DNA of 64,000 nt, from NCBI RefSeq assembly GCF_018977255.1, contig NW_024704836.1, positions 62,001 through 126,000 of the forward strand, given 5' to 3'. Under the pieces are notes generated by a model that was given only the letters and a program-made list of their open reading frames with translations, made no database searches and was not told the DNA's origin. This document shows, one piece after another, positions 1-64,000 of this stretch. Position 1 is the first letter of the stretch. Every line of letters starts with the position of its first letter. A program made the translations under genes and the position numbers. Source of the DNA: Callorhinchus milii. Lineage: Eukaryota.

Positions 1-525
1 GGTTGGGTTGATGTTGGTGATCTCCAGGGTGGAGTTCATGTTGTCCGGTGTCTTGGTAATGTTGTAGCCGGATTTAAACTTGTCCTCATATTCGGTTGAG
101 TATCGGTTATATCCGATCAATGTGAGGCCTCCCTGATGGGGTTGGATGTACCAGAGCATTGTATTGTCAGTACTGGCAGTATTGTCCTGGTGACAATTCA
201 AACTCACTGTCTCCCCCTCTCTGGCTGTGACTGTCCGCGGCCTCTGAGTCACAAAAACTCCCAGTGACAGACCTGCAAAGACAATATAACAATGAGATCC
301 CTCCAACAGGGAATCTGGGCTGAATGTCCTGGGGGGTGTTCAATGGATTACGCACACACCAACAGGGGAATCATCATGGACAGCAATGGAGGCCGGGGCA
401 GTGGGGAGGGGAGGTTATGAAATCCCTGTGGATTTGAGCGTTTACGGGGATGAGAGAGATGTTGAGAGATACTCACAGGGCCAGAGGATGGAGATCAGAG
501 AGACAGTGAGAAAGGACAGACTCAT
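1..525 (-). CDS. V1, TCR-like V segment, 3' end cut by window edge (leader 477-525, V exon 272->1); CDR1 CHQDNTASTDNTM, CDR2 YNRYSTEY
   Basis: Leader ATG at 525, GTGAGT donor, TTTGCAG acceptor at 273, open V frame with Cys and WY motif. Confidence 0.88.
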
Positions 526-1143
526 TGTTGGCAGAAACTTGGATTAACATTGGAAACCTCACACCTCAGTTCTCTCTTCCTCCCTCTTTATCCTCACACG
601 CGGTCACACACTGTATCTCACACTCTTTTTATGTCTCACATCGACTCTCTCTCTCTCTCTGACTTTTTTTTGTGGACTGACGCTCTGACGGATTGAAGGC
701 ACCAATGACACCAAAGTATTCAAAAGATATCACAACCCCCAACTCCCCCCCCACCCCCACACCCCCCACCCTGTGGGACAGGAGAGTGAATCAGTGACGC
801 TGCAGCCTCCCCTCGGGCATAGACTTGTAACTACAGAGTGCAAAATTGTTCCCAGGTTTAGATATGGAGATACACAGAAGATACGGTGGAGGAAGTTGGC
901 TCAATGGAGGCAGGAAGATGGTTAGTATTGTGTGTTTGTGTGTGTTCAACATGAGGCAGTTACTTGTGTGTTTGTGTGCGTGTGTTGGGGGTTGGGATGA
1001 GACAGAAACGAATCAGGGAAAGTTAAGCACTCGTGTTGGTGACTATGGAAGAGAAGTGTGAATGATAATTATCTGTGGAAGGCGATAGGCAGTGAGGAGC
1101 TTAATTCAATGTGATGTTGTAGATGCGGTCGGGGACCGTCTTA

Positions 1144-1473
1144 CAATATTAATAACAATAATAATCCTTGCATTTGATAAAGTGTTTTTCACGTCTTCCA
1201 GACATCTCAAAGCGCTTCACAGAAGAGACTATCAAATGAATTGACCGTATATTTGTGGGTGGAATGTGGCAGCCAATTGCGCACAGCAGCGTCCCACAAA
1301 CAAACAGTCGCGGATTGAAACGACTAATTTATCATTGTTGTTTTATTTTCAGGGATTATTATCAGGTTTGTGGAGTAGGGAAACTTGCCCGAGGTTTCAC
1401 ATCGCTGGGAATCGAACCCAGGTCTCTCGCTCGCAAAGCGAGTGCTCTAACCACTGAGCTCCAGGACTCCACA
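1144..1473 (-). mobile_element. tRNA-derived SINE with Deu-domain-like core and L2-type tail
   Basis: Minus strand: A box TGGAGCTCAGTGG, B box GGTTCGATTCCC (1407-1418), core GCTGTGCGCAATTGGCTGCC, tail ..ATCAAATGCAAGGATTATTATT; absent from paralogous spacers at ~28822 and ~33254. Confidence 0.8.
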
Positions 1474-1951
1474 TCCTTTATTGTCCGTGTCTCAGAAGGT
1501 GTGAGAGACAGACCCACCCCATGTTTGCCGGCCATGAAGACCCATGAAGGCGCTGAGTAAACCCCAGTCCTTGTTGGCTTTGAGTTGGAGAGTCAGTGAG
1601 TTTGGGAGTCAGTGTGTGTGAGTGTGAGAGTGTCAGTGAGGCAGTGAGTGTGTGAGTGAGTCGGTGGGTGTGTGTGTTCCCTGCACTGACTGCTTTAATC
1701 GGGGACAGAGACAGAGACACAGAGGGAACAGTGTGGAGAGTGGGCGACATGGAGCCGTGGCTACTCCGGCCCTGAACCTCGATTTCTCTCTGTCTCTCAA
1801 TCGTCTGTGTTGATGGGTTTTATTTCTGCAGAGACTGAGGGCAGGTGTTGGCGGGGGAGGGGCTGGTGTGTGTGTGTGTGTATAGAATCGAGTGGTTGTG
1901 TATCCTGTGTGAGGTTTATGTACGAGAGATCTGTCTCTCTCTCACGCTGTG

Positions 1952-2479
1952 CCCTTCTCTCGCAGCGCAGTAATACACCCCCTCCTGGGTTGGGTTCATG
2001 TTGGCGATCTCCAGGGTGGAGTTCATGTTGTCCGGTGTCTTGGTCATGTTGTAGCCGGATTTAAACTTGTCCTCATATACTGTTGAGGCTTGGTTATATC
2101 CGATCAATGTGAGGCCTCCCTGATGGGGTTGGATGTACCAGAGCATTATAAAATAGTCTTTGTTATTCTGGTGACAATTCAAACTCACTGTGTCCCCCTC
2201 TCTGGCTGTGACTGTCCGCGGTCCCTGAGTCACCAAACCTCCCAGTGACAGACCTGCAAAGACAATATAACAGTGAGATCCGCCGACAGGGAATCTGGGC
2301 TGAATGTCCTGGGGAGTGTTCAATGGATTACGCACACACACAAAGCGCAATCATCGCGGACAGAGAGAGGTGTGATATGAAATCCCTGTGGATTTGAGAG
2401 TTTACGGGGATGAGAGAGATGTTGAGAGATACTCACAGGGCCAGAGGATGGAGATCAGAGAGACAGTGAGAAAGGACAT
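1952..2479 (-). CDS. V2, intact V segment (43-bp leader 2437-2479, V exon 1952-2253, 23-RSS 1913-1951); CHQNNKDYFIM / YNQASTVY
   Basis: Splice sites, Cys-Trp-YYC Ig V motifs, CACAGCG-23bp-ACATAAACC read directly. Confidence 0.92.
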
Positions 2480-3351
2480 TGTTGGCAGAGACTTGGATTA
2501 ACATTGGGAACCTCACACCAGAGCTCAGGTTCCTCTCTCTATCTGTATCTCTCTGTCTCTCCCTCTCTCTATGTCTCTGGACTGAAGCTCTGACAGAGTA
2601 AAGTCTGAACCATATCGGAAGTGGGGCCTCACCTCCCCCCAGTGATGGGAGGTGGAGCTGGGGAGGAGGGGAGGTGTCTTAGTGAAGCTACAGCCTCCCC
2701 CGGGGTATGAACTGGGTACAGCGGGTCCCAAAATTGGTTCCAAATTCAGAGATAGGGACACAGATGCATCTGGAATGCGTTGCCTGAAAGGCTGGTGGAA
2801 GCCCATTCGATAACAGCTTTCATGAGACAAGTAGATACCTATTTGGGGAGGACAAGTTTGCAGGTTATGGGGAGAGAGCGGGGGAGTGGGGTTGAATTGG
2901 AAGCTCTTTTCAAAGACCGGCACAGACACGATGAGCCGAATGGCCTCCATCTGCGCTGTATAATTCTGTGATTCTACATCGGTCTCGTGCCCCACCCACC
3001 AGTGGGGCATTGGTGGGAGGTTTGAGATGTGGGGAAAGGGAAGCCTTTTAGTGAAGTTACAGCCTCCCCCGGGGTATTGGTCAGGAACACGAGATCACAA
3101 AATTGGTCCCAGATTCAGAGACACAGAGGGAACAGTGTGGAGAGTGGGCGACATGGAGCCGTGGCTACTCCGGCCCTGAACCTCGATTTCTCTCTGTCTC
3201 TCAATCGTCTGTGTTGATGGGTTTTATTTCTGCAGAGACTGAGGGCAGGTGTTGGTGGGGGAGGGGCTGGTGTGTGTGTGTATAGAATCGAGTGGTTGTG
3301 TATCCTGTGTGAGGTTTATGTACGAGAGATCTGTCTCTCTCTCACGCTGTG

Positions 3352-3896
3352 CCCTTCTCTCGCAGCGCAGTAATACACCCCCTCCTGGGTTGGGTTCATG
3401 TTGGCGATCTCCAGGGTGGAGTTCATGTTGTCCGGTGTCTTGGTAATGTTGTAGCCGGATTTAAACTTGTCCTCATATGTGGTTGAATATTGGTTATATC
3501 CGATCAATGTGAGGCCTCCCTGATGGGGTTGGATGTACCAGAGCATCGTATAAAGGGAGCTGTCGTCCTGGTGACAATTCAAACTCACTGTCTCCCCCTC
3601 TCTGGCTGTGACTGTCCGCGGCCCCTGAGTCACCAAAGCTCCCAGTGACAGACCTGCAAAGGCAATATAACATCAGGTCATCCTGCCCACAGGGAATGTC
3701 CTGGTCTGATTCCTGTAATTACACACAAATACAAACTCACATTCACACAAACACATCCCTCATCTCAAACACAGAGAGGATTTGGATATGAAATCGCAGT
3801 GAATTTGGGAGCCTGAGGGGGATTGGGAGATGTTGAGACATACTCACGGGGCCAGAGGATGGAGATCAGAGAGACAGTGAGAAAGGACAGACTCAT
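3352..3896 (-). CDS. V3, intact V segment (leader 3848-3896, V exon 3352-3653, RSS 3313-3351); CHQDDSSLYTM / YNQYSTTY
   Basis: ORF 3316..3636, leader, alternative intron type, RSS. Confidence 0.92.
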
Positions 3897-4761
3897 TGTT
3901 GGCAGAGACTTGGATTAACATTGGGAACTTCACACCAGAGCTCAGGTTCCTCTCTCTGTCACTGTCTCTCTGTCTCTCCCTCTCTCTATGTCTCTGGAAT
4001 GAAGCTCTGGCAGAGTAAAGTCTGTACCACATCGGAAGTGGGCCTCACCTCCCCCCAGTGATGGGAGGTGGAGCTGGGGAGGAGGGGAGGTGTCTTAGTG
4101 AAGCTACAGCCTCCCCCGGGGTATGAACTGGGTACAGCGGGTCCCAAAATAGGTTCCAAATTCAGAGATAGAGACACAGATGCATCTGGAATGCGTTACC
4201 TGAAAGGCTGGTGGAAGCCCATTCGATAACAGCTTTTATGAAAGAAACAGATACCTATTTGGGGAGGACAAATTTGCAGGTTATGGGGAGAGAGCGGGGG
4301 AGTGGGGTTGAATTGGAAGCACTTTTCAAAGACCGGCACAGACACAATGAGCTGAATGGCCTCCATCTGCGCTATATGATTCTACGAATCTACATCGGAA
4401 GTGGGTCTCATGCCCCACCCACCAGTGGGGCATTGGTGGGAAGTTTGAGATGAAGCCTTTTAGTGAAGTTGCAGCCTCCCCCGGGGTATTGGTCAGGAAC
4501 ACGAGATCACTAAATTGGTCTCAGAGTCAGAGACACAGAGGGAACAGTGTGGAGAGTGGGCGACATGGAGCCGTGGCTACTCCGGCCCTGAACCTCGATT
4601 TCTCTGTCTCTCAATCGTCTGTGTTGATGGGTTTTATTTCTGCAGAGACTGAGGGCAGGTGTTGGTGGGGGAGGGGCTGGTGTGTGTGTGTATAGAATCG
4701 AGTCGTTGTGTATCCTGTGTGAGGTTTATGTACGAGAGATCTGTCTCTCTCTCACGCTGTG

Positions 4762-5293
4762 CCCTTCTCTCGCAGCGCAGTAATACACCCCCTCCTGGGT
4801 TGGGTTCATGCTGGAGATCTCCAGGGATGATTTCTTCTTGTCATTACTCTGTGTAATGTTGTAACCAGATTCAAAGCCTTTTTCATACGTTGGGTTTGAC
4901 ATAAAGGCATATCCGATCAATGTGAGGCCTCCCTGATGGGGTTGGATGTACCAGAGCATCATATCAAGGGATTTGTCGTTGTGGCTGCATCTCAAAGTCA
5001 CTGTCTCCCCCTCTCTGGCTGTGACTGTCCGCGGCCTCTGAGTCACCAAAGCTCCCAGTGACAGACCTGCAAAGACAATATAACAATGAGATCCGCCGAC
5101 AGGGAATCTGGGCTGAATGTCCTGGGGGGTGTTCAATGGATTACGCACACACACAAAGCGCAATCATCGCGGACAGAGAGAGGGTGTGATATGAAATCTC
5201 TGTGGATTTGAGAGTTTACGGGGAATTGAGAGATGTTGAGAGATACTCACAGGGCCAGAGGATGGAGATCAGGGACACAGTGAGAAAGGACAT
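4762..5293 (-). CDS. V4, intact V segment (leader 5251-5293, V exon 4762-5066, RSS 4723-4761); CSHNDKSLDMM / YAFMSNPTYEKGF
   Basis: ORF 4726..5163, leader, RSS. Confidence 0.92.
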
Positions 5294-5918
5294 TGTTGGC
5301 AGAGACTTGGATTAACATTGGGAACCTCACACCAGAGCTCAGGTTCCTCTCTCTCTCTCATATACACTCTTTCTTTAACTCTTTCTTTAACTCTTTCTTT
5401 AACACTCACACTCCCTTTCTCAGTAACTCTCCCCCTCTATCCTAAACGTTGTCTCTCTCACTTTATCTCTGTGAAGCTCTGGAAAAGGAAAGGCTCCAAT
5501 GACACCAAAGTGTCGGCACCACATCGGAAGTGACCTCTACTCCCCCCCCCCCCACCCACCTTGTGGGACATTGGTTGGAGAGGAGATGTGGGTGGGTGGG
5601 GATGTCTTAGTGAAGCTACAGCCTCCCCCAAAGTATGGCCTGGGAACAGTTGCTCATAAAATTAGTCGTTGGTTCGGAGACGTAGAGTGAACAGTGAGGA
5701 GAGTGGGTGACATGGAGCCGTGGCTACTCCGGCCCTGAACCTCTATTTCTCTCTGTCTCTCAATCGTCTGTGTTGATGGGTTTTATTTCTGCAGAGACTG
5801 AGGGCAGGTGTTGGCGGGGGAGGGGTTGGTGTGTGTGTGTGTGTGTGTATAGAATCGAGTGGTTGTGTATCCTGTGTGAGGTTTATGTACGAGAGATCTG
5901 TCTCTCTCTCACGCTGTG

Positions 5919-6467
5919 CCCTTCTCTCGCAGCGCAGTAATACACCCCCTCCTGGGTTGGGTTCATGTTGGTGATCTCCAGGGTGGAGTTCATGTTGTCA
6001 GGTGTCTTGGTAATGTTGTAGCCGGATTTAAACTTGTCCTCATATTCGGTTGAGTATCGGTTATATCCGACCAATGTGAGGCCTCCCTGATGGGGTTGGA
6101 GGTACCAGAGCATCGTAATGTCAGTACTGGCAGTATCGTCCTGGTGACAATTCAAAGTCACTGTCTCCCCCTCTCTGGCTGTGACTGTCCGCGGCCTCTG
6201 AGTCACCAAAGCTCCCAGTGACAGACCTGCAAAGACAATATAACAATGAGATCGCTCCAACAGGGAATCTGAGCTGAATGTCCTGGGGGGTGTTCAATGG
6301 ATTACGCACACACCAACAGGGACAGCAATGGAGGCCGGGGCGGTCGGGATGGGAGGATATGAAATCCCTGTGGATTTGAGAGTTTACGGGGATGAGAGAG
6401 ATGTTGAGAGATACTCACAGGGCCACAGGATGGAGATCAGAGAGACGGTGAGAAAGGACAGACTCAT
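5919..6467 (-). CDS. V5, intact V segment (leader 6419-6467, V exon 5919-6226, RSS 5880-5918); CHQDDTASTDITM / YNRYSTEY
   Basis: ORF 5883..6260, leader, RSS; same protein as V30. Confidence 0.92.
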
Positions 6468-7134
6468 TGTTGGCAGAGACTTGGATTAACATTGGGAACC
6501 TCACCCCTTAGTTCTCTCTCTCTCTTCATCCTAACACATTTGCGCACACACTGCTTTTCTCTCTCATATCAACGCCCTCTCTCACTCTGACTCTCTCTCT
6601 CTGTCTGTGGACTGCAGCTCTGGCAGATTGAAGGTACCAATGACACCAAAGTATTCGAACTACAGCACAAGAACTCCTCCGCCCCCCCCCCCCCCCCCCC
6701 GTTCCCTGGGGTATTGGTGAGTGAATCAATGAGGCTATAGCCTCCCCTAGAGCACGGACTGGTAACTGCAATCTATCGCTGAGATTTCCTTGTGTAGTTG
6801 AGATGAATGGAAATCCCAGCTTCATTTGCATACTCTTAAACATGATGGTTAGTTTCCACATGTGTCAAGACACACGGCCGACCAAAATTTATACCCCTGG
6901 ATGTTTCTGTTTGAAACTCCCTGAAGATCCAAAGATATAGTTTTCAGTGCATTATCAGACACTTCATGTTGCCTTTGCCGAGGAACTAATTCAGTATCAA
7001 ATTGAAAAATAACATTCAAATCTTAGCCGTGCTGCACATAATCCACCTAAACCGGACTGATATCACTGAGGAAGAACAAAGCTGGTTATTGCTTGAGCAT
7101 TTGCCTCACCAGCAAATCAACAATTCATACAACA

Positions 7135-7575
7135 ACAAGATTTCATTTATAGAGCGCCTTTCACGTCGAGAGGACGTCCCAAGGCGCTGGACAGTTGGGT
7201 CAGGACCCGAGCATTGGGGGGAAATGGTCAGGGTGAGGGGAGGGAAGGGAGGGAGCGAGGAGGGGGAAGAGAGTCGAGAGGGGAGCTGAAGGCTCGGTCA
7301 AAGAGAGAGGTCTTGAGACCGGCCTTCAAGGAGGAAAGGGAGGAGGCGGCGAAGGCACTGGGGGATAGAGTTCCAGAGCTTCGGGGCTGAGAGCCTGAAG
7401 GCCCGGCCCCGATGGTAGGGCGGTTGGGGCGGGGGATGTGGAGCAGACCGGAGCCAGAGGAACGGAGGGTACGGGCAGGTAGGTAGGGGGATAGTAATTC
7501 GGAGAGGTAGGAGGGAGCGAGGCCGTGAATGGCCTTGTAGGTGAGGACGAGGATCTTGAATTCAAGACGATGTTC
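7135..7575 (-). mobile_element. L2 LINE 3' fragment (duplicate ~45086-45526)
   Basis: FKILVLTYKAIHGLAPSYLSELL..YLPARTLRS is the typical L2 ORF2 C-terminus, followed by a GGCGCTCTATAAATGAAAT tail. Confidence 0.85.
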
Positions 7576-8105
7576 ATTCAAACCTATATTCATGGAATAA
7601 ATGATCGCCTCATTTTAGAAGCAATTCTGGAAACAACATCAAGAGGTAAGAGAGCAATATTCAACTCAAACTACTTAGCTTCCCTTTATTCAATCTTTGC
7701 AAGTTTTGACCCCATGAGGGAGCCAAGGATATTACACCACTAATACCCCGGGCTGCAGAGGTGATTCTGCCGTAATATAGGGGTAAACAAAGACATAGAG
7801 CAAATCTATCAGCAGTTAAGTTTTATGCTGAACCATGCAGAGGGTTGCCTGGCGCGCACAGATAGTTTGTGTACAGCAAGTTCTAATACCCAAACTGACC
7901 TCTTCCCGAGGATATTCCCATCCTGATATTCTCTGTGCAGCACGGGGTACGAGAACCCTTGGATCTGACTGTCCCGATCCATGCTGGTCTGCAGCTCGAT
8001 CAGTAAATACTGTCTTACATTCATTCCAGTCGTTTGTCCTGATCCGATACAAAGCTTCTCCCTCTGCCCTGGTGGAGATTTGGTCTCTGGTGTAAGAGAT
8101 GATCC

Positions 8106-8443
8106 TAATAATAACATGCCTTGCATTTGATATAGCGCTTTGATGTAACATCTTCTCGACCTCTCAAAGCGCTTCACAGAGTATACTGTAAAGTGAATTG
8201 ACTGTATGTTTGTGGGTATACAGCAGCCGATTGAGCACAGCAACATCTCACAAACATTCGTGGGTTCAGTTACCAAATTATTATTCTTTTAAGGATTATT
8301 ATCACCGCTAAAGCAATCCGTTAATCAACTGGCAACCGGGTGCCTAGTTACTGCTCGGTAAACAGAGGCGCGTGGAGAAAAGAAACTTGCCCAATATTTC
8401 GCCCTTCAGAGGCGAGTGCTCTAACCCACTGAGCTACAGACTC
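8106..8443 (-). mobile_element. Diverged copy of the same Deu-type SINE (duplicate ~46057-46394)
   Basis: Similar head (GAGTCTGTAGCTCAGTGG..AGAGCACTCGCC), core and tail to 1144-1473. Confidence 0.75.
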
Positions 8444-9279
8444 ACAATAGCTTCTTGGGAGGTGGTTAAACACCCCAGGTGTCTGAGTGAGGGGGGGAGG
8501 TGAAATAGGGGGAGAGGGGGGAGAGGTGAATGAGGTGAGGGAGGAGGACAAGTTCAATGATGAAGGGGACAAGATCTGAAGGTAGAAGACAGATGTTTGG
8601 TCAGCCAGGGCGAAGAAACACACACCCACACACACACTGACCAACTCACTCACCTATTTACTGACTCACTTGCACTCTCAGACTCAAACTCACTGACTCA
8701 CACACATTCACCGACTCTCACGTTCGTTGACTGGAAGTCAACAAGGCCTCAGAGCCTCCATGGCTGGGTCGTATCTCGGAGCTTCTGTCCAACGGTGGGC
8801 AACAATGGCGGAAACAGAAAGTGACCAGCCAGATATAGGAAGTGAGCACCGGGAAACAGGTGTTTGCAGCCAGGAAACGGGAAGCGAGACTGGAAAACAG
8901 GACGTAAATAGCCAGCAACCAGAAGAGCACAGACAGGAAACTAGAATTGAGGCTGGGAGACAGGAAGTTGGTACTAATTTTGCTGTCTGTAGTTACCAGT
9001 CCGTCCCCTAGTGGAGGCTATGGCCTCATTGACTCACTCTCCCATTCCCACAGGGGGTGGGTTCTTTTGCTGTAGTTCGAATACTTTGGTGTCATTGGTG
9101 TCTTCAAACTGCCAGAGCTTCAGTCCACAGACAGAGAGAGAGTCAGACTGAGAGAGGCCATTGATCTGAGAAATAAAAGGAGTGTGTGTGAGACACAGTG
9201 TGTGCATACATACATACAGAGACAGAGAAGGACAACTGAGGTGTGAAGTTCCCATTGTTAATCCAAGTCTCTGCCAACA

Positions 9280-10027
9280 ATGAGTCTGTCCTTTTACACT
9301 GTCTCTCTGATCTCCATCCTCTGGCCCTGTGAGTATAACTCAACATTAATAATAATAATCCCTCCAAAAAACCAAAAACAATAATTAAATTGGTCATTTT
9401 CAATCTACGACTGTTTGTGGGACATTGCTGTGCGCAATTGGCTGCCGCGTTCGCCCACAAATATACAGTCAATTCACTTTACAGTGTGTTCTGTGAAGCG
9501 CTTTGGGACGTCCTCCCGACGTGAAAAGCACTATATCAAATGCAAGGATTATTATTATTATATTATTATCTCTCACTTCCCCTCAGGCTCTAAGTACACT
9601 GGGATTACATGCGCGCTCTCCCTATCCGCGATGATCGCGCTTTGTGTGCGTAATTCATTGAACACCCCCCAGGACATTCAGCCCAGATTCCCTGTCGGCG
9701 GATCTCACTGTTATATTGTCTTTGCAGGTCTGTCACTGGGAGCTTTGGTGACTCAGTGGCCGCGGACAGTCACAGCCAGAGAGGGGAGACAGTGAGTTTG
9801 AATTGTCACCAGGACGACAGCTCCCTTTATACGATGCTCTGGTACATCCAACCCCATCAGGGAGGCCTCACATTGATCGGGTACAATGAACACTCAACCA
9901 TATATGAGGACAAGTTTAAATCCGGCTACAACATTACCAAGACAACTAATAGAATGAACTCCACCCTGGAGATCTCCAGCATGAACCCAACCCAGGAGGG
10001 GTGTATTACTGCGCTGCGAGAGAAGGG
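9280..10027 (+). pseudogene. V6, V segment with two 1-G deletions in G runs (leader 9280-9328, V exon 9728-10027, RSS 10028-10066); probably sequencing error
   Basis: Duplicate V31 is intact and differs in the exon by homopolymer length. Confidence 0.7.
9345..9568 (+). mobile_element. 5'-truncated Deu-type SINE inside the V6 intron (duplicate ~47296-47519)
   Basis: TTGCTGTGCGCAATTGGCTGCCGCG..AAGCGCTTTGGGACGTCC..GTGAAAAGCACTATATCAAATGCAAG(ATT)n. Confidence 0.8.
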
Positions 10028-10407
10028 CACAGCGTGAGAGAGAGACAGATCTCTCGTACATAAACCTCACACAGGATACACAACGACTCGATTCTATACA
10101 CACACACACCAGCCCCTCCCCCGCCAACACCTGCCCTCAGTCTCTGCAGAAATAAAACCCATCAACACAGACGATTGAGAGTCAGAGAGAAATCGAGGTT
10201 CAGGGCCGGAGTAGCCACGGCTCCATGTCGCCCACTCTCCACACTGTTCCCTCTGTGTCTCTGAATCTGGGACAATTTAGTGATCTCGTGTTCCTGACCA
10301 ATACCCCGGGGGAGGCTGTAACTTCACTAAAAGGCTTCTCTTTCCCCACATCTCAAACCTCCCACCGATGCCCCACTGGTGGGTGGGGCACGAGACCCAC
10401 TTCCGAT

Positions 10408-11635: not shown

Positions 11636-11912
11636 TACATAAACCTGACACTGGATACACGACTCAATTTACCAGACACACAAAGAAACCAACACCTCCC
11701 CAACATCTCCACCTCCCACTAATGTCCCACTGGGGGGAGGGGGTGGGGGGGAGGCAGAGAGACGCGCTTCCGCTTTGGGGTCATTAATGTTTTTACGCTG
11801 CCGAGTGTGAGAGATAGAGACAGAGCCAATGTGTGAGAGACATTTAGAAAGACAGAGAGGAACCTGAGCTCTGGTGTGAGGTTCCCAATGTTAATCCAAG
11901 TCTCTGCCAACA

Positions 11913-53657: not shown

Positions 53658-54195
53658 ATGAGTCTGTCCTTTCTCACTGTCTCTCTGATCTCCATCCTCT
53701 GGCCCTGTGAGTATCTCTCAACATCTCTCTCATCCCCGTAAACTCTCAAATCCACAAGGAATTCATATCACATCCTCTCTCTGTCCGCGATGATCGCGCT
53801 TTGTGTGTGTGCGTAATCCATTGAACACCCCCCAGGACATTCAGCCCAGATTCCGTGTCGGCGGATCTCACTGTTATATTGTCTTTGCAGGTCTGTCACT
53901 GGGAGCTTTTGTGACTCAGAGGCCGCGGACAGTCACAGCCAGAGAGGGGGAGACAGTGACTTTGAGATGTTACCAGAATAACACTAAATATGAAACAATG
54001 CTCTGGTACCTCCAACCCGATCAGGGAGGCCTCACATTGATCGGATATGCTGTTCTGTCAAACCCAACGTATGAGAAAGGCTTTGAATCTGGTTACAACA
54101 TTACACAGAGTAATGACAAGAAGAAATCATCCCTGGAAATCTCCAGCATGAACCCAACCCAGGAGGGGGTGTATTACTGCGCTGCGAGAGAAGGG
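53658..54195 (+). CDS. V35, intact duplicate of V10 (RSS 54196-54234)
   Basis: ORF 53803..54231. Confidence 0.92.
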
Positions 54196-54629
54196 CACAG
54201 CGTGAGAGAGAGACAGATCTCTCGTACATAAACCTCACACAGGATACACGACTCGATTCTATACACACACACACCAGCCCCTCCCCCGCCAACACCTGCC
54301 CTCAGTCTCTGCAGAAATAAAACCCATCAACACAGACGATTGCGAGACAGAGAGAAATCGAGGTTCAGGGCCGGAGTAGCCACGGCTCCATGTCGCCCAC
54401 TCTCCACACTGTTCCCTCTGTGTCTCTGAATCTGGGACCAATTTAGTGATCTCGTGTTCCTGACCAATACCCCGGGGGAGGCTGTAACTTCACTAAAAGG
54501 CTTCCCTTTCCCCTCATCTCAAACCTCCCACCAATGCCTCACTTTCAGGCAACGCATTACAGATGCATCTGTGTCTCTATCTCTGAATTTGGAACCAATT
54601 TTGGGACCCGCTGTACCCAGTTCATACCC

Positions 54630-54851: not shown

Positions 54852-55385
54852 ATGAGTCTGTCCTTTCTCACTGTCTCTCTGATCTCCATCCTCTGGCCCT
54901 GTGAGTATCTCTCAACATCTCTCTCATCCCCGTAAACTCTCAAATCCACAGGGATTTCATATCACACCCTCGCTCTATCGGTGATGATCGCTTTGTGTTT
55001 GTGCGTAATCCATTGAACACCCCCCAGGACATTCAGCCCAGATTCCCTGTCGGAGGGATCTCATTGTTATATTGTCTTTGCAGGTCTGTCACTGGGAGTT
55101 TTGGTGACTCAGGGGCCGCGGACAGTCACAGCCACAGAGGGGGAGACAGTGAGTTTTACATGTTATCAGAATGACAGTGCCCTTGATACAATGCTCTGGT
55201 ACATCCAACCCCACCAGGGAGGCCTCACATTGATCGCATATATCTATATGTCCCCAACGTATGAGAAAGGCTTTGAATCCGGCTACAACATGACAAAGAC
55301 AACTAATGACAAGGAATCCACCCTGGAGATCTCCAGCTTGAACCCAACCCAGGAGGGGGTGTATTACTGCGCTGCGAGAGAAGGG
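54852..55385 (+). CDS. V36, intact (RSS 55386-55424); CYQNDSALDTM / YIYMSPTYEKGF
   Basis: ORF 55101..55421, leader 54852-54900. Confidence 0.92.
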
Positions 55386-56002
55386 CACAGCGTGAGAGAG
55401 AGACAGATCTCTCGTACATAAACCTCACACAGGATACACAACCACTCGATTCTATACACACACACACACACCAGCCCCTCCCCCGCCAACACCTGCCCTC
55501 AGTCTCTGCAGAAATAAAACCCATCAACACAGACGATTGAGAGACAGAGAGAAATCGAGGTTCAGGGCCGGAGTAGCCACGGCTCCATGTCGCCCACTCT
55601 CCACACTGTTCCCTCTACGTCTCCGAACCAACGACTAATTTTATGACCAACTGTTCCCAGGCCATACTTTGGGGGAGGCTGTAGCTTCACTAAGACACCC
55701 CCACTCCCCCACATCTCCTCTCCAACCAATGTCCCACAAGGTGGGTGGGGGTGGGTGGGGGGAGAGGTCACTTCCGATTTGGTGCCGACACTTTGGTGTC
55801 ATTGGAGACTTTCCTTTTCCAGAGCTTCATTCCACAGAGATAGAGTGAGAGAGACAATGTTTAGGATTGAGGGGGAGAGTTATTGAGAAAGTTAACCCAA
55901 AAGCGAGAGTGTGAATGTTAAAGAGTGAGTGTATGTGAGAGAGAGAGAGGAACCTGAGCTCTGGTGTGAGGTTCCCAATGTTAATCCAAGTCTCTGCCAA
56001 CA

Positions 56003-56531
56003 ATGTCCTTTCTCACTGTCTCTCTGATCTCCATCCTCTGGCCCTGTGAGTATCTCTCAACATCTCTCTCATCCCCGTAAACTCTCAAATCCACTGGGAA
56101 TTCATATCACACCCTCTCTCTGTCCGCGATGATCGCGCTTTGTGTGTGTGCGTAATCCATTGAACACCCCCCAGGACATTCAGCCCAGATTCCCTGTCGG
56201 CGGATCTCATTGTTATATTGTCTTTGCAGGTCTGTCACTGGGAGCTTTGGTGACTCAGTGGCCGCGGACAGTCACAGCCAGAGAGGGGGAGACAGTGACT
56301 TTGAATTGTCACCAGGACGACAGCTCTCTTACTGTGATGCTCTGGTACATCCAACCCCATCAGGGAGGCCTCACATTGATCGGATATAACCAATATTCAA
56401 CCACATATGAGGACAAGTTTAAATCCGGCTACAACATTACCAAGACACCGGACAGAATGAACTCCACCCTGGAGATCTCCAGCGTGAACCCAACCCAGGA
56501 GGGGGTGTATTACTGCGCTGCGAGAGAAGGG
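56003..56531 (+). CDS. V37, intact (43-bp leader; RSS 56532-56570); CHQDDSSLTVM / YNQYSTTY
   Basis: ORF 56142..56567. Confidence 0.92.
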
Positions 56532-57761
56532 CACAGCGTGAGAGAGAGACAGATCTCTCGTACATAAACCTCACACAGGATACACAACCACTCGATTCTA
56601 TACACACACACACACACCAGCCGCTCCCCCGCCAACACCTGCCCTCAGTCTCTGCAGAAATAAAACCCATCAACACAGACGATTGAGAGACAGAGAGAAA
56701 TCGAGGTTCAGGGCCGGAGTAGCCACGGCTCCATGTCGCCCACTCTCCACACTGTTCACTCTACGTCTCTGAATCTGGGACCAATTTTGTGATCTCGTGT
56801 TCCTGACCAATACCCCGGGGGAGGCTGTAACTTCACTCGGTTAGTTCCTGGGATGAGTGGACTGACCTATGAGGAGAGACTGAATAAACTGGGACTGTAT
56901 TTTCTGGAGTACAGAAGAATTAGGGGGATCTTATTAAAACATATAAGATTATTAAAGGGCTGATAAAGTAGACACTGAGGGTCTGTTTCCCCGGTGGGAG
57001 AATCTATAACCGGGGGTCACAGTCTTAACATTAAGGGTCAGCCTTTTAGAACAGAGTTGAGGAAACATTTCTTCACTCAGAGGGCAGTGACTTTATGGAA
57101 TCCACTCCCCCAGAAGGCTGTAGATGTCAGTCCTTGAACATCTTCAAGGCTGAGACTGAGAGATGTTTAAAAAATAGAGGGATTAGCGGATATGGGGATA
57201 GAGCAGGTAATTAGAGTTAGGTCTGAAGATCAGCTGTGATCTTATCAAATGGCGGTGCAGCTCGAGGGGCCGAATGGCCGACTCCTGCTCCTAATTCTTA
57301 TGTTCTTATGTTCACTCACAGGCTTCCCTTTCCCCACAAAAGAGCTTCCAATTCAACCCCACTCCCCCGCTCTCTCCCCATAACCTGCAAACTTGTCCTC
57401 CCCAAATAGTTATCTACTTCGCCCTTAGAAGCTGTTATCGAATGGGCTTCCACCAGCCTTTCAGGTAATGCATTCCAGATGCATCTCTATCTCTGAATTT
57501 GGCACCAATTTTGGGACTCGCTGTACCCAGTTCATACCCTGGGGGAGGCTGTAGCTTCACTAAGACACGTCCCCTCCTCCCCAGCTCCACCTCCCATCAC
57601 TGGGGGGAGGTGAGGCCCACTTCCGATGTGGTGCTGACTTTACTCTGTCAGAGCTTCATTCCAGAGACATAGAGAGAGGGAGAGACAGAGAGACAGTGAC
57701 AGAGAGAGGAACCTGAGCTCTGGTGTGAGGTTCCCAATGTTAATCCAAGTCTCTGCCAACA

Positions 57762-58296
57762 ATGAGTCTGTCCTTTCTCACTGTCTCTCTGATCTCCATC
57801 CTTTGGCCCTGTGAGTATCTCTCAACATCTCTCTCATCCCCATAAACTCTCAAATCCACAGGGAATTCATATCACACCCTCTCTCTGTCCGCGATGATCG
57901 CACTTTGTGTGTGTGCGTAATCCATTGAACACCCCCCAGGACATTCAGCCCAGATTCCCTGTCGGCGGATCTCATTGTTATATTGTCTTTGCAGGTCTGT
58001 CACTGGGAGCTTTGGTGACTCAGAGGCCGCGGACAGTCACAGCCAGAGAGGGGGAGACAGTGACTTTGAGATGTAGCCACAACGACAAATCCCTTGATAC
58101 GATGCTTTGGTACATCCAACCCCATCAGGGAGGCCTCACATTGATTGGATATAATGAATACTCAACCGTATATGAGGATAGGTTTAAATCCGGCTACAAC
58201 ATTACCAAAACACCCAACAACATGAACTCCACCCTGGAGATCACCAACATCAACCCAACCCAGGAGGGGGTGTATTACTGCGCTGCGAGAGAAGGG
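57762..58296 (+). CDS. V38, intact (RSS 58297-58335); CSHNDKSLDTM / YNEYSTVYEDRF
   Basis: ORF 57907..58332. Confidence 0.92.
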
Positions 58297-59184
58297 CACA
58301 GCGTGAGAGAGAGACAGATCTCTCGTACATAAACCTCACACAGGATACACAACGACTCGATTCTATACACACACACACACACCAGCCCCTCCCCCGCCAA
58401 CACCTGCCCTCAGTCTCTGCAGAAATAAAACCCATCAACACAGACGATTAATAGACAGAGAGAAATCGAGGTTCAGGGCCGGAGTAGCCACGGCTCCATG
58501 TCGCCCACTCTCCACACTGTTCCCTCTGTGTCTCTGTCTCTGAATCTGGGACCAATTTTGTGATCTCGTGTTCCTGCCCAATACCCCGGGGGAGGCTGTA
58601 ACTTCACTGAAAGTCTTCCCTTTCCCCACAACTCAAACCTCCCACCAATGCCCCACTGTTGGGTGGGGCACGAGAGCCACTTCCAATGTAGAATGATAGA
58701 ATTATACAGCGCAGATGGAGGCCATTCGCCTCATCGTGTCTGTGTCGGTCTTTGAAAAGAGCTTCCAATTCAACCCCACTCCCCCACTCTCTCCCCATAA
58801 CCAGCAAACTTGTCCTCCCCAAATAGGTATCTACTTGTCTCATAAAAGCTGTTATCGAATGGGCTTCCACCAGCCTTTCAGGCAACGCATTACAGATGCA
58901 TCTGTGTCCCTATCTCTGAATTTGGAACCAATTTTGGGACCCGCTGTACCCAGTTCATACCCCGGGGGAGGTTGTAGCTACACTAAGACACGTCCCCTCC
59001 TCCCCAGCTCCACCTCCCATCACTGGGGGGAGGTGTGGCCCACTTCCGATGTGGTGCAGATTTTACTCTGTCAGAGCTTCATTCCAGAGACATAGAGAGA
59101 GGGAGAGACAGAGAGACACAAACAGAGAGAGGAACCTGAGCTCTGGTGTGAGGATCCCAATGTTAATCCAAGTCTCTGCCAACA

Positions 59185-59714
59185 ATGAGTCTGTCCTTTC
59201 TCACTGTCTCTCTGATCTCCATCCTCTGGCACTGTGAGTATCTCTCAACATCTCTCTCATCCCCGTAAACTCTCAAATCCACAGGGATTTCATATCACAC
59301 CTCTCTCTGTACGCGATGATCGCGCATTGTGTGTGTGCGTAATCCATTGAACACCCCCAGGACATTCAGCCCAGATTCCCTGTCGGCGGATCTCATTGTT
59401 ATATTGTCTTTGCAGGTCTGTCACTGGGAGCTTTGGTGACTCAGTTGCCGCGGACAGTCACAGCCAGAGAGGGGGAGACAGTGACTTTGAGATGTTACCA
59501 GAAGGACAGTGCCCTTAATACAATGCTGTGGTACCTCCAACCCCATCAGGGAGGCCTCACATTGATTGGATACGGTTATGCGTCAAACCCAACGATGGAG
59601 GATGCTTACAAACTTGACTACGAAGTTAAACAGACAGACGACTATAAGAACTGTTCCCTGGAGATCAAGAAGGCAACCCAGGAGGGGGTGTATTACTGCG
59701 CTGCGAGAGAAGGG
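59185..59714 (+). CDS. V39, intact (RSS 59715-59753); CYQKDSALNTM / YGYASNPTMEDAYK, extra FR3 Cys
   Basis: ORF 59433..59750. Confidence 0.92.
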
Positions 59715-60094
59715 CACAGCGTGAGAGAGAGACAGATCTCTCGTACATAAACCTCACACAGGATACACAACGACTCGATTCTATACACACACACACCAGC
59801 CCCTCCCGCGCCAACACCTGCCCTCAGTCTCTGCAGAAATAAAACCCATCAACACAGACGATTGAGAGACAGAGAGAAATCGAGGTTCAGGGCCGGAGTA
59901 GCCACGGCTCCATGTCGCCCACTCTCCACACTGTTCCCTCTGTGCCTCTGTCTCTGAATCTGGGACCAATTTTGTGATCTCGTGTTCCTGACCAATACCC
60001 CGGGGGAGGCTGTAACTTCACTAAAAGGCTTCCCTTTCCCCACATCTCAAACCTCCCACCAATGCCCCACTGGTGGGTGGGGCACGAGACCGAT

Positions 60095-60591: not shown

Positions 60592-61156
60592 ATGAGTCTG
60601 TCCTTTCTCACTGTCTCTCTGATCTCCATCCTATGGCCCTGTGAGTATCTCTCAACATCTCTCAATTCCCCTCAGGCTCCCAAATACACTGGGATTTCAT
60701 ATCATCCTCCCCTCTCTATGTCTGAGAAGATCCGGCTCTGTGTATGTGTGTATGTGTATGTGTGAGGGTGTGCGCCCGTATGTGTATGTAATTCCGGGAA
60801 TCAGACCAGAACATTCCCTGTGGTCAGGATGACGGATGTTATATTGTCTTTGCACGTCAGTCACTGGGAGCTTTGGTACTCAGGAGCCGCGGACAGTCAC
60901 AGCCAGAGAGGGGGAGACAGTGACTTTGAGATGTAGCCACAACGACAAATCCCTTAACATGATGCTTTGGTACATCCAACCCCATCAGGGAGGCCTCACA
61001 TTGATCGGATATAACCAAGCCTCAACCACCTATGAGGACAAGTTTAAATCCGGCTACAACATTACCAAGACACCAGACAGAATGAACTCCACCCTGGAGA
61101 TCTCCAACATCAACCCAACCCAGGAGGGGGTGTATTACTGCGCTGCGAGAGAAGGA
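60592..61156 (+). CDS. V40, canonical acceptor lost but predicted in frame via a new AG at 60859-60860 (RSS 61157-61195); CSHNDKSLNMM / YNQASTTY
   Basis: Leader 60592-60640 is phase 1; an exon starting at 60861 falls in the 60836..61192 frame. Confidence 0.65.
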
Positions 61157-61767
61157 CACAGCGTGAGAGAGAGACAGATCTCTCGTACATAAACCTCACA
61201 CAGGATACACAACGACTCGATTCTATACACACACACACCAACCCCTCCCCCGCCAACACCTGCCCTCAGTCTCTGCAGAAATAAAACCCATCAACACAGA
61301 CGATTGAGAGACAGAGAGAAATAGAGGTTCAGGGCCGGAGTAGCCACGGGTCCATGTCGCCCACTCTCCACACTGTTCCCTCTACGTCTCCGAGCCAACG
61401 ACTAATTTTATGAGCAACTGTTCCCAGGCCATACTTTGGTGGAGGCTGTAGCTTCACTAAGACAAACCCACTCCCCCACATCTCCTCTCCAACCAATGTC
61501 CCACAAGGTGGGTGGGGGTGGGTGGGGGAGAGGCCACTTCCGATTTGGTGCCGACACTTTGGTGTCATTGGAGCTTTCCTTATCCAGAGCTTCATTCCAC
61601 AGAGATAGAGTGAGAGAGACAATGTTTAGGATTGAGGTGGCAAGTTATTGAGAAAGTTAACCCAAAAGTGAGAGTGTGAATGTTAAAGAGTGAGTGTATG
61701 TGAGAGAGAGAGAGGAACCTGAGCTCTGGTGTGAGGTTCCCAATGTTAATCCAAGTCTCTGCCAACA

Positions 61768-62296
61768 ATGAGTCTGTCCTTTCTCACTGTCTCTCTGATC
61801 TCCATCCTCTGGCCCTGTGAGTATCTCTCAACATCTCTCTCATCCCCGTAAACTCTCAAATCCACAAGGAATTCATATCACATCCTCTCTCTGTCCGCGA
61901 TGATCGCGCTTTGTGTGTGTGCGTAATCCATTGAACACCCCCCAGGACATTCAGCCCAGATTCCCTGTCGGCGGATCTCACTGTTATATTGTCTTTGCAG
62001 GTCTGTCACTGGGAGCTTTGGTGACTCAGAGGCCGCGGACAGTCACAGCCAGAGAGGGGGAGACAGTGACTTTGAATTGTCACCAGGACGACAGCTCTCT
62101 TACTGTGATGCTCTGGTACATCCAACCCCATCAGGGAGGCCTCACATTGATCGGGTATGTCGTTAACTCAGCGATAACGTATGAGAAATCTGGCCACAAC
62201 ATTACCAAGACACCTGACAACATGAACTCCACCCTGGAGATCTCCAGCATAAACCCAACCCAGGACGGGGTGTATTACTGCGCTGCAAGAGAAGGG
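61768..62296 (+). pseudogene. V41, intact ORF with non-functional RSS (CAAAGCG, 21-bp spacer; 62297-62333); CHQDDSSLTVM / YVVNSAITYEKSGH
   Basis: The invariant CAC of the heptamer is broken and the spacer is 2 bp short. Confidence 0.8.
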
Positions 62297-63523
62297 CAAA
62301 GCGTGAGAGAGACAGATCTCTCGTACATAAACCTTACACAGGATACCCAACCACTCGATTCTATACACACACACACCAGCCCCTCCCACGCTAACACCTG
62401 CCCTCAGTCTCTGCAGAAATAAAACGCATCAACACAGACGATTGAGAGACAGAGAGAAATAGAGGTTCAGGGCCGGAGTAGCCACGGCTCCATGTCGCCC
62501 ACTCCACACTGTTCCCTCTGTGTCTCTGAATCTGGGACCAATTTTGTGATCTGTGTTCCTGACCAATACCCCGGGGGAGGCTGTAACTTCACTCGGTTAG
62601 TTCCTGGGATGAGGGAACTGACCTATGAGGAGAGGCTGAATAAACTGGGACTGTATTTTCTGGAGTACAGAAGAATTAGGGGGGATCTTATTAAAACATA
62701 TAAGATTATTAAAGGGCTGATAAAGTAGACACTGAGGGTCTGTTTCCCCGGTGGGAGAATCTATAACCGGGGGTCACAGTCTTAACATTAAGGGTCAGCC
62801 TTTTAGAACAGAGTTGAGGAAACATTTCTTCATTCAGAGGGCAGTGACTTTATGGAATCCACTCCCCCAGAAGGCTGTAGATGTCAGTCCTTGAACATCT
62901 TCAAGGCTGAGACTGATAGATGTTTAAAAAATAGAGGGATTAGTGGATATGGGGATAGAGCAGGTAATTAGAGTTAGGTCAGAAGATCAGCCATGATCTT
63001 ATCAAATGGCGGGGCAGCTCGAGGGGCCAAATGACCGACTTCTGCTCCTAATTCTTATGTTCTTATGTTCACTCACAGGCTTCCCTTTCCCCACAAAAGA
63101 GCTTCCAATTCAACCCCAATCCCCCGCTCTCTCTCCATAACCTGCAAACTTGTCCTCCCCAAATAGTTATCTGCTTCTCCCTGAGAAGCTGTTATCGAAT
63201 GGGCTTCCACCAGCCTTTCAGGCAACGCATTCCAGATGCATCTGTGTCTCTATCTCTGAATTTGGCACCAATTTTGGGACCCGCTGTACCCAGTTCATAC
63301 CCCGGGGGAGGCTGTAGCTTCACTAAGACACCTCCCCTCCTCCCCAGCTCCACCTCCCATCACTGGGGGGAGGTGAGGCCCACTTCCGATGTGGTGCAGA
63401 CTTTACTCTGTCAGAGCTTCATTCCAGAGACATAGAGAGAGGGAGAGACAGAGAGACAGTGACAGAGAGAGGAACCTGAGCTCTGGTGTGAGGTTCCCAA
63501 TGTTAATCCAAGTCTCTGCCTCA

Positions 63524-64000
63524 ATGAGTCTGTCCTTTCTCACCGTCTCTCTGATCTCCATCCTCTGGCCCTGTGAGTATCTCTCAACATCTCTCTCATC
63601 CCCGTAAACTCTCAAATCCACAGGGATTACATATCACACCCTCTCTCTGTCCGCCATGATTGCGCTTTGTGTGTGTGCGTAATCCATTGAACACCCCCCA
63701 GGACATTCAGCACAGATTCCCTGTCGGCGGATCTCATTGTTATATTGCCTTTGCAGGTCTGTCACTGGGAGCTTTGGTGACTCAGAGGCCGCGGACAGTC
63801 ACAGCCAGAGAGGGGGAGACAGTGAGTTTGAGATGTAGCCACAACGACAAATCCCTTGATATGATGCTTTGGTACATCCAACCCCATCAGGGAGGCCTCA
63901 CATTGATTGGATATAATGAATACTCAACTGTATATGAGGACAAGTTTAAATCCGGCTACAACATTACCAAGACACCTGACAACATGAACTCCACCCTGGA
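63524..64000 (+). CDS. V42, duplicate of V17, truncated by window edge (V exon from 63757)
   Basis: Leader 63524-63572, acceptor, open V frame. Confidence 0.88.

Follow-up and report, generated by a model that had tools for sequence, protein, structure and literature searches.

Introduction

Somatic conversion of immunoglobulin (Ig) genes in chicken and rabbit depends on activation-induced cytidine deaminase (AID); it draws on arrays of pseudo-variable (pseudo-V) donors, most of them pseudogenes without a leader or a recombination signal sequence (RSS), which serve a single rearranged acceptor. Exchange of sequence between V genes is also known from the germline, as germline (meiotic) gene conversion among Ig V paralogues has been described for the T15 heavy-chain V (VH) family of the mouse (PMC2187977, PMC2189069). 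The independent assortment of framework regions (FRs) and complementarity-determining regions (CDRs) in Ig proteins was reported by Kabat, Wu and Bilofsky in 1979-80 and led to the 'minigene' hypothesis (PMC2184887, PMC2185892). Outside the Ig loci, region-restricted gene conversion has been attributed to the variable exons of the clustered protocadherins (Noonan et al. 2004, PMC353213, as cited in PMC12227049), and concerted evolution by conversion to the constant genes for the T-cell receptor (TCR) beta chain (C-beta; PMC2188480, as summarised in PMC5278385); TCR V segments are usually described as evolving by birth and death (summarised in bioRxiv 10.1101/2024.09.05.611428). Here we analyse a 64-kb window (the whole stretch of DNA examined, 64,000 nucleotides of contig NW_024704836.1) of Callorhinchus milii, the elephant shark, that carries a tandem array of V segments resembling those of the TCR beta chain. 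The analysis supports the view that germline recombination has shuffled CDR1 and CDR2-FR3 cassettes on a near-invariant scaffold, as had been proposed in a preliminary description of this DNA, and it is argued that gene conversion between loci is the probable cause.

Results

The window contains 40 complete V segments and two that are cut by its ends (V01 and V42; the numbering V1-V42 is that of the preliminary description), spaced at 1.2-1.4 kb and present in both orientations, with V1-V5 on the minus strand, V6-V17 on the plus strand and, beyond an assembly gap, V18-V30 on the minus and V31-V42 on the plus strand. Only about 28 of these genes are independent because V5-V17 duplicate V30-V42, and all tests were run on 28 non-redundant genes (V02-V04, V17 and V18-V41), copy 1 of the duplicate being left out. 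Nucleotide diversity (pi) along the aligned unit of these 28 genes was sharply mosaic, as can be followed on V32 (50093..50437, + strand; CDR1 NQNDSALNT, cassette B), which serves as the exemplar unit. Its first invariant linker, comprising promoter, 5' untranslated region and leader exon (49823..49919, ATG at 49862), lies in a region of pi 0.05-0.07 and is followed by the intron (49920..50091), a variable module of discrete types with pi of 0.12-0.26 (around 0.17). FR1 forms the second linker (50093..50167; pi 0.01-0.07), CDR1 the next variable module (50168..50207; pi 0.23-0.35), FR2 with the sequence MLWYxQPHQGGLTLIGY the third linker (50208..50248; pi 0.007-0.05), and CDR2 together with FR3 and hypervariable region 4 (HV4) a further variable module (50249..50364; pi 0.15-0.37). 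The fourth linker (50365..50622) combines the end of FR3 (QEGVYYCAARE), the RSS (CACAGCG-23-ACATAAACC), a (CA)n tract and approximately 220 nt of non-coding flank at pi of 0.004-0.08, beyond which the distal 3' spacer (50623..50742) is again variable, distal spacers having pi of 0.2-0.45. The near-invariance of leader, FR1, FR2, the YYCAARE motif and the RSS noted in the preliminary description was thus recovered quantitatively (pi 0.007-0.07), and the RSS and its 23-nt spacer were the same in almost all copies. In broad terms, pi was 0.01-0.04 for FR1, FR2, YYCAARE, RSS and 3' flank, and 0.12-0.37 for intron, CDR1 and CDR2-FR3.

A comparison of synonymous and non-synonymous divergence by region (pS and pN/pS) found the frameworks uniform at silent sites and the CDR modules divergent: pooled pS was 0.019 in FR1 and 0.037 at the FR3 end, and 0.353 in CDR1 and 0.307 in CDR2-FR3 (0.35 and 0.31 for the modules outlined on V32), with pN/pS of 1.0 in CDR1, 0.8 in CDR2-FR3 and 0.18 in FR2. 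Silent framework sites and the non-coding 3' flank were several-fold more uniform than the intron. Selection at the protein level does not account for the uniform frameworks, which instead appear to have been homogenised, in an instance of concerted evolution, around old cassettes. The stretch at unit offsets 723-980 (50365-50622 in V32), which comprises the RSS spacer together with some 220 nt of non-coding flank and has the (CA)n tract just past the nonamer, is more uniform than the intron or the synonymous sites of the CDRs, and this uniform 3' flank can be read as homogenised. A CTCF-like motif behind the invariant flank was considered and rejected, there being only two matches, both in the spacer and at chance level, and a comparison of five units with known RNA families (Rfam) returned one sub-threshold microRNA-like match only.

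Clustering of the CDR1 and CDR2-FR3 nucleotides recovered the cassette types of the preliminary description, with true four-gamete configurations. The combinations listed there are present at the nucleotide level and all of them are kept in the 28-gene set: YQNNTKYE occurs with cassette B in V10 (identical to V35) and with C in V28; DSALNT with A in V34, with B in V7 (identical to V32) and with C in V39; SHNDKSLD with A in V17, V21, V27 and V29 and with B in V4; and QDDSS with A, with D in V24 and with F in V41, the CDR1 of V24 being 12% distant from the others. Recombination was supported by the pairwise homoplasy index (PHI), which for the core unit was equalled in 0 of 1000 permutations (z = -10.5) and for the interval from CDR1 to CDR2-FR3 gave z = -7.0; within CDR1 alone PHI was not significant, probably because the sites are too few. 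Maximum-likelihood trees of leader plus intron, CDR1, CDR2-FR3 and the 3' flank each reject the other three (log-likelihood differences of 220-680; approximately unbiased (AU) test, p from 8e-4 to 1e-31), in keeping with the earlier assertion that a single duplication tree is insufficient.

Mantel correlations of pairwise distances were high within modules (r = 0.79 between CDR2 and FR3v, 0.76 between the halves of the intron and 0.40 between those of CDR1; all p = 0.0002) and not significant across any linker, with r = 0.08 for upstream region against intron over promoter and leader, -0.04 for intron against CDR1 over FR1, 0.06 for CDR1 against CDR2-FR3 over FR2 and -0.08 for CDR2-FR3 against the distal spacer over FR3 end, RSS and flank. 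The unit was thereby shown to consist of five coherent variable modules, the upstream spacer being the first, that are joined by four invariant linkers and are mutually unlinked, and every one of the four linkers behaves as an exchange junction, since the modules are linked internally and unlinked across any invariant stretch. With 0 of 1000 permutations in PHI, the AU rejections and a correlation of 0.06 across FR2 as against 0.79 inside CDR2-FR3, the reassortment exceeds chance and the wording that cassettes 'reassort freely' is a fair one.

When each gene was painted as a copy of the others, it resolved into a median of six segments, and internal tracts had a median length of ~100 nt. A Sawyer-style fragment test on 378 gene pairs found 167 whose shared fragments exceed in length those of any column permutation; this count is partly inflated by stretches that are polymorphic through singletons of a few divergent genes and is taken as supporting evidence only. 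Donor switches occurred across FR2 in 19 of 28 genes (0.85 per 100 nt for the CDR1-to-CDR2 interval, the highest density), across FR1 in 14, across the FR3 end in 15 and inside CDR2-FR3 in nine; the excess of FR2 over the inside of CDR2-FR3 was significant (p = 0.015), that over FR1 (p = 0.28) or the FR3 end (p = 0.41) was not, and informative sites are most numerous on the two sides of FR2. A breakpoint that separates CDR1 from CDR2 can only be placed in FR2, the sole sequence between the two. The interpretation offered previously is therefore supported as regards germline cassette exchange and not supported as regards a special hotspot in FR2, the modules on either side of the other linkers being equally unlinked (r of -0.04, -0.08 and 0.08) and switches across FR2 not significantly more frequent than across FR1 or the FR3 end. 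Four-gamete incompatibility rose smoothly from 0.30 for sites 1-5 nt apart to 0.66 at 320-640 nt, and was 0.56 inside CDR1.

Individual events could be followed in block duplications (V33-35/V39-41, V36-38/V40-42 and V19-21/V02-04), in which a background divergence of 3-4% (96-97% identity) is interrupted by discrete patches of 25-80% divergence, which affect CDR1, CDR2-FR3 and the intron as well. V04 carries the upstream region, intron and CDR1 of V29 (0-2% divergence) and is ~99% identical to it on either side of an 82-nt patch at 4827-4908, its CDR2-FR3 matching that of V32 and V35 (4% divergence, 96% identity), while V33 and V39 differ in CDR1 only and V37 and V41 in CDR2 only. V35 (53890..54234, +; CDR1 YQNNTKYET, cassette B) is a mosaic of three sources, with the flanks and intron of V41 (1-2%; 2% in the upstream region, 1% in the intron), the CDR1 of V28 (3%) and the CDR2-FR3 of V32 (2%). 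The CDR1 of V39 resembles that of V33 with a patch of ~16 nt of V32/V34 type; such micro-patches are individual observations only, because PHI within CDR1 alone is not significant. In several cases donor and acceptor are found on the two strands of a single contig free of gaps. Pairs on opposite strands, between which unequal crossing-over cannot act, include V28 (-) with V35 (+) and V04 (-) with V32 (+). The exchange events are double-breakpoint patches, that is, gene conversions and not single crossovers.

The typical unit consists, from 5' to 3', of a leader exon (ATGAGTCTGTCC...), a GTGAGT donor, an intron of 170-200 nt, a V exon ending in YYCAARE and an RSS. Of the 28 non-redundant units, only V31, which lacks the leader exon, and V40, whose acceptor reads AC, depart from this pattern; the other 26 all combine an ATG leader exon, the GTGAGT donor, an intron of 170-200 nt and a cag acceptor. 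Directly 3' of the V exon, 38 of 40 copies have the RSS CACAGCG-23-ACATAAACC (V16 and V41 carry CAAAGCG), and its 23-nt spacer has the same sequence in almost all of them. As nearly all copies keep their own leader, splice sites and consensus RSS, they are predicted to be ordinary rearranging V segments. The translated V exon matches Pfam V-set (E = 1e-13), and intact copies all keep the contexts of Cys23 (LNC/LRC), Trp41 (MLWY) and Cys104 (YYC). Sequence homologues were all unnamed 'Ig-like domain' predictions, and all from C. milii. Among the best 60 PDB matches were 44 TCR beta chains, three single-chain alpha/beta TCR constructs and 13 antibodies, the last with similar single-domain E-values; separate TCR alpha, gamma or delta chains were not found among these 60. 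The V segments are by similarity most like those of TCR beta (TRBV type), and the array would represent one subfamily of TCR-beta-like V segments. No diversity (D), joining (J) or constant (C) segments were found within the 64-kb window. The database proteins P0001, P0005 and P0009-P0012, from C. milii sequence outside the window, are further members of the family with extra cassette types and hybrids, P0001 joining a V37-like FR1 and CDR1 start (HQDD) to the KSLDM and CDR2-FR3 of V29; either the family and its mosaicism reach beyond the window or the assembly behind these predictions has chimeras of its own.

Positions 4521..26014 (V05-V17, copy 1) and 42471-64000 are 99.2% identical over 21.5 kb, the match ending at the end of the window, and from 5830 on they differ by approximately 100 single-base homopolymer indels, an error to which 454 sequencing is prone, and by about eight substitutions in 20 kb. 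Eight of the 13 V exons of copy 1 are frameshifted, seven of these being in frame in copy 2 and V15/V40 broken in both, so that wherever the reading frame discriminates the errors sit in copy 1 (4521-26014). Copy 1 is best read as a probable second assembly, redundant and of low quality, of one locus or haplotype; a real duplication of very recent date is less likely. For the published C. milii genome, testis DNA was sequenced by 454 and Sanger methods (PMC3964593). The frameshifted genes of copy 1 were also considered as pseudogenes, a reading that was ruled out as their counterparts in copy 2 are substitution-identical and in frame.

The assembly gap (26820..26849) is intergenic and lies about 700 nt beyond the RSSs of V17 (+) and V18 (-), which face each other, at the centre of a tail-to-tail inverted repeat whose arms (25501-26819 and the reverse complement of 26942-28263) are 90.4% identical. 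Around it, stop codons shut all frames within 212 nt on the plus strand and 40 nt on the minus strand, and because every frame is shut on both strands no V exon or open reading frame (ORF) spans the gap. A fold-back artefact was ruled out, the arms being only 90.4% identical and bearing different V genes, and from the sequence of its arms the gap marks the centre of a tail-to-tail junction of two different paralogous units. None of the tests relies on continuity or relative orientation across it. The meeting of the plus and minus sub-arrays at 26820-26941, with arms of 1.3 kb, constitutes a large palindrome that is either real or a scaffolding choice.

The first minus-strand sub-array begins with V01 (1..273), which is cut by the window start and represented by the first 270 nt of its V exon, followed by V02 (V exon and RSS, 1913..2254; CDR1 HQNNKDYFI, cassette A), V03 (3313..3654; HQDDSSLYT, cassette A, with a divergent intron type), V04 (4723..5067; SHNDKSLDM, cassette B) and V05 (5880..6227, duplicate of V30). 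A shared in-frame deletion of 6 nt at the start of the leader, by which ATGAGTCTGTCC becomes ATGTCC and MSLSFL becomes MSFL, was observed in V02, V04, V24, V29 (at ~43240) and V37; its distribution does not track the flanks, as it is present in V02 and not in the block paralogue V19, and it is another reassorting marker. The plus-strand genes of copy 1 are V06 (9727..10066, duplicate of V31), V07 (12143..12487, of V32), V08 (13359..13697, of V33), V09 (14796..15139, of V34), V10 (15935..16279, of V35), V11 (17125..17465, of V36), V12 (18268..18606, of V37), V13 (20024..20360, of V38), V14 (21439..21775, of V39), V15 (22883..23220, of V40) and V16 (24023..24363, of V41), with frameshift errors in V06, V09, V11-V14 and V16 and, in V15, further frameshifts beside the acceptor change that it shares with V40; V17 (25770..26111; SHNDKSLDM, cassette A) is the counterpart of the cut V42.

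On the minus strand beyond the gap lie V18 (27648..27991; YQNNTAHQT, a D-like cassette, CDR2 frameshift), V19 (29260..29601; HQNNKDYFI, A), V20 (30669..31010; HQDDSSFTV, A), V21 (32072..32411; SHNDKSLDT, A), V22 (33691..34035; YQNDTDYQV, a B-like cassette forming its own cluster), V23 (34860..35195; HQDDSALDT, a C-like cassette forming its own cluster), V24 (36038..36382; RQDDSSVYT, D), V25 (37446..37792; HQDNTASTDIT, A, with a frameshift near the 3' end), V26 (38623..38960; HQKDTAYQT, C, with an FR1 frameshift and a divergent intron type), V27 (40036..40377; SHNDKSLDT, A), V28 (41444..41782; YQNNTKYEA, C), V29 (42677..43018; SHNDKSLDM, A) and V30 (43831..44178; HQDDTASTDIT, a CDR1 longer by two codons, A). 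The C-type CDR2-FR3 cassette of V26, V28, V33 and V39, and also of V23, carries an extra cysteine (KNCSLEI) and a deletion of two codons before QEGVYYC. Across the V exons, codon 11 of FR1 (50123-50125 in V32) encodes R, W, G, L or E (CGG/TGG/GGG/TTG/GAG), the rest of FR1 being invariant, and raises the pN/pS of FR1 to 3.2; hypervariability at this site may be driven by CpG or result from selection.

The minus and plus sub-arrays are separated by a head-to-head spacer of 3.5 kb (44200..47650, with its duplicate at ~6250-9700) that contains nothing but transposon-like ORF debris. V31 (47678..48019; HQDDSSLYT, A), like its duplicate V06, adjoins this spacer and has unrelated upstream sequence in place of the leader exon (47228-47677; 9277-9726 for V06). 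The plus-strand sub-array continues, besides V32 and V35, with V33 (51309..51647; HQKDTAYQT, C), V34 (52744..53085; SQHDSALNT, A), V36 (55083..55424; YQNDSALDT, a B-like cassette forming its own cluster), V37 (56229..56570; HQDDSSLTV, A), V38 (57994..58335; SHNDKSLDT, A), V39 (59415..59753; YQKDSALNT, C; the positional paralogue of V33), V40 (60855..61195; SHNDKSLNM, A), V41 (62000..62341; HQDDSSLTV, the unique cassette F) and V42 (63756..64000), which is cut by the window end. V40 (60845-60900) and V15 (22873-22930) have an acceptor changed from AG to AC together with an FR1 frameshift, and because both defects occur in both duplicate copies V40 is likely to be a genuine pseudogene and not a sequencing error. 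In V41 (62318-62341) and V16 (24340-24363) the heptamer reads CAAAGCG for CACAGCG, by which the invariant CAC is lost, and V41, in frame and with its unique cassette F, probably cannot rearrange efficiently.

Discussion

Germline gene conversion between loci is the probable explanation of the mosaic array of C. milii. Such conversion, whether meiotic or premeiotic, would have been repeated, with tracts of roughly 50-200 nt. Tract ends would come to lie in the invariant linkers, as uninterrupted identity is a requirement of recombination and heteroduplex in modules that are ~30% divergent would be expected to be rejected by mismatch repair. Tracts anchored in this manner would both keep the linkers uniform and move modules whole. 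Conversion traffic, along with purifying selection that acts on fold and RSS, could thus hold the linkers homogeneous by concerted evolution, and the old cassette lineages would persist and recombine, probably aided by selection for diversity of CDR1 and CDR2. It is plausible that selection favouring varied surfaces of CDR1 and CDR2/HV4 contributes to keeping these lineages; such selection is not required by the data, since pN/pS is neutral-looking and the intron is equally modular. The outcome would be a combinatorial germline V repertoire that is used by ordinary V(D)J recombination.

Several observations weigh against this explanation or limit its reach. Selection for diversity would be a plausible factor, but the pN/pS of the CDR modules is only 0.8-1.0. 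The evidence comes from one assembly and a single assembled haplotype, and the assembly is imperfect here, with an indel-laden redundant copy of 21.5 kb and a gap at the inversion junction. Of the results, the loss of linkage to the distal spacer is the least certain, because an invariant linker of 260 nt could mislead an assembler that uses reads of ~400 nt, and the sole discordance between the copies, V04 as against V29, sits at the edge of the duplicated block. Since 30% of informative site pairs only 1-5 nt apart are incompatible, recurrent mutation or very short tracts also contribute, and the direction, timing and tract lengths of the conversions would depend on the model adopted. The beta-chain assignment is one by similarity, in a window without D, J or C segments.

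That the mosaics could instead be chimeric consensus sequences, or transplants introduced by polishing, from collapsed or mis-overlapped near-identical repeats of 1.2 kb is unlikely. It is true that the redundant copy differs almost only by homopolymer indels, that the gap lies at a palindromic junction and the orientation switches several times, that the published C. milii assembly was made from 454 and Sanger reads (PMC3964593) and the 260-nt linker is near the 454 read length, and that V04 and V29 disagree where the duplicated block ends. The two copies have different indel errors, so that each was computed as a consensus of its own; nonetheless all cassettes of 12 gene pairs (V05-V16 and V30-V41) are the same in both, with about eight substitutions in 20 kb. 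Exon 1 of the database protein P0014 matches exactly only in copy 1 (20949-21071) and its exon 2 only in copy 2 (59469-59747), and because its exons match different copies P0014 stems from a third consensus with the same DSALNT plus C gene (V39); P0002 and P0016 also match the window exactly. Furthermore, the interval from CDR1 through FR2 and CDR2 to FR3 spans ~200 nt and so falls inside one read of any platform, the patches are sharp-edged, clean replacements with intact frames and not blended consensus, and linkage within modules, which random chimerism would erode, is intact (r 0.76-0.79). Another alternative is that the hybrids arose by reciprocal unequal crossing-over that favours breakpoints in FR2, each hybrid consisting of the 5' half of one gene and the 3' half of another. 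Unequal crossing-over is to be expected in a tandem array and probably made the multi-gene block duplications, and a preference for FR2 would fit the interval between CDR1 and CDR2 being the densest in donor switches (19 of 28 genes, 0.85 per 100 nt), significantly above the inside of CDR2-FR3 (p = 0.015). As the source of the mosaics this mechanism is nevertheless very unlikely, since it predicts that CDR1 stays linked to intron and upstream region and CDR2-FR3 to the downstream spacer, and the correlations are -0.04 and -0.08. The clearest events moreover have two breakpoints with the same sequence on both sides (the 82 nt of V04/V29, V33/V39 and V37/V41), the mechanism cannot act on the opposite-strand pairs V28-/V35+ and V04-/V32+, and the switches in FR2, the linker richest in flanking informative sites, do not significantly exceed those in FR1 or at the FR3 end (p = 0.28 and 0.41).

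A history without any transfer, in which a recent array diverged in place at the CDRs through localised germline hypermutation, diversifying selection or both and arrived at convergent motifs, would fit the elevation of the CDR modules at both synonymous and non-synonymous sites (pN/pS 0.8-1.0), the incompatibility of 0.30 at 1-5 nt, from which some homoplasy is likely, and the precedent of RAG activity in shark germ cells (PMC2193156). We regard it as extremely improbable: genes that are not closest relatives by their flanks carry the same cassettes at 96-100% nucleotide identity, which extends to synonymous sites, shared cassettes are not as divergent at synonymous sites as unrelated ones, and the non-coding intron and spacers show equally discrete, reassorting types. 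Nor are the WRC/GYW hotspots of AID concentrated in the CDRs (per 100 nt, 9.9 in CDR1 and 14.4 in CDR2, compared with 10.9 in FR2 and 15.2 at the FR3 end), an absence of enrichment that also counts against the proposal that, in thymocytes, the array supplies donors and acceptors when rearranged TCR genes undergo somatic templated conversion. That proposal has a very slim chance of being correct. Dense packing at 1.2-1.4 kb, both orientations and near-identical frameworks do recall the pseudo-V donor arrays of the chicken, AID-dependent hypermutation of TCR genes occurs in sharks (PMC5931798), and V41 has a crippled heptamer with an intact and unique cassette. Nothing in the window, however, speaks for somatic events; nearly all copies have leader, splice sites and consensus RSS, only V41 (heptamer) and V31 (leader) being crippled, so that there is no donor-only pool of pseudogenes; and if the DNA is that of the published genome it came from testis (PMC3964593), and the mosaics are of the germline. 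An enrichment of AGY serine codons in the CDRs, looked for as a hint of somatic targeting, was not found. There is likewise only a slight chance that the linkers, including the 23-nt RSS spacer and the ~220 nt of flank, are kept up to serve a cassette-exchange system as its homology anchors, a system that would operate, beyond evolutionary time, also at high frequency per generation or somatically in thymocytes; if true, this would amount to templated combinatorial diversification of CDR1 and CDR2 in the holocephalan TCR beyond V(D)J joining.

The germline reassortment of cassettes has consequences for how such loci are understood. CDR1 and CDR2 are usually seen as fixed germline features of each V gene, and here they behave as independently assorting cassettes on a homogenised scaffold, in an array from the oldest jawed-vertebrate lineage with TCRs. 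Their assortment multiplies the germline surfaces that contact the major histocompatibility complex (MHC) or other ligands without the evolution of new frameworks, and the array offers a clean natural example of homology tracts channelling the endpoints of gene conversion. Trees and counts of V genes can mislead for arrays of this kind, in which whole-gene trees are meaningless and about one third of what look like genes reflects redundancy of the assembly.

In the literature searched, neither this array nor conversion of V segments in the TCR loci of chimaeras or sharks was found to be described, an absence that is not proof. Birth-and-death evolution, the usual description of TCR V segments, is reflected in the block duplications and the few pseudogenes of the C. 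milii array, but predicts a tree-like divergence of whole genes that the array violates segment by segment. The C-beta genes also exhibit germline conversion in the TCR beta locus that homogenises coding sequence; there, however, two C genes are homogenised only, while in the V array of C. milii the linkers are homogenised and the variable modules shuffled. The clustered protocadherins are similar in having tandem variable exons in which some segments are homogenised and the specificity-determining ones remain diverse, but belong to another gene family with neither RSS nor rearrangement, and free reassortment of diverse segments is not the feature reported for them.

With the chicken and rabbit systems the array shares dense V arrays in both orientations, common frameworks and templated patches of tens to hundreds of nucleotides, and it differs in that the C. 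milii copies are predicted to be capable of rearrangement and the mosaics are germline. The observations of Kabat, Wu and Bilofsky display the same phenomenology, identical sets of frameworks with different CDRs and the reverse, although theirs was a somatic assembly inferred from proteins and the C. milii array consists of contiguous germline genes, each an intact V segment. The mouse T15 VH family has in common with it the non-reciprocal transfer of germline patches between closely related and linked V segments, the differences between two genes being found in other members, but has four members, whereas the C. milii family is TCR-beta-like with at least 28 distinct members in 64 kb, and its exchange brings CDR1, CDR2-FR3, intron and spacers to linkage equilibrium, the non-coding modules joining in. 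The process itself is therefore already known from Ig V genes, and the array of C. milii would represent an unusually clean and extensive case of it.

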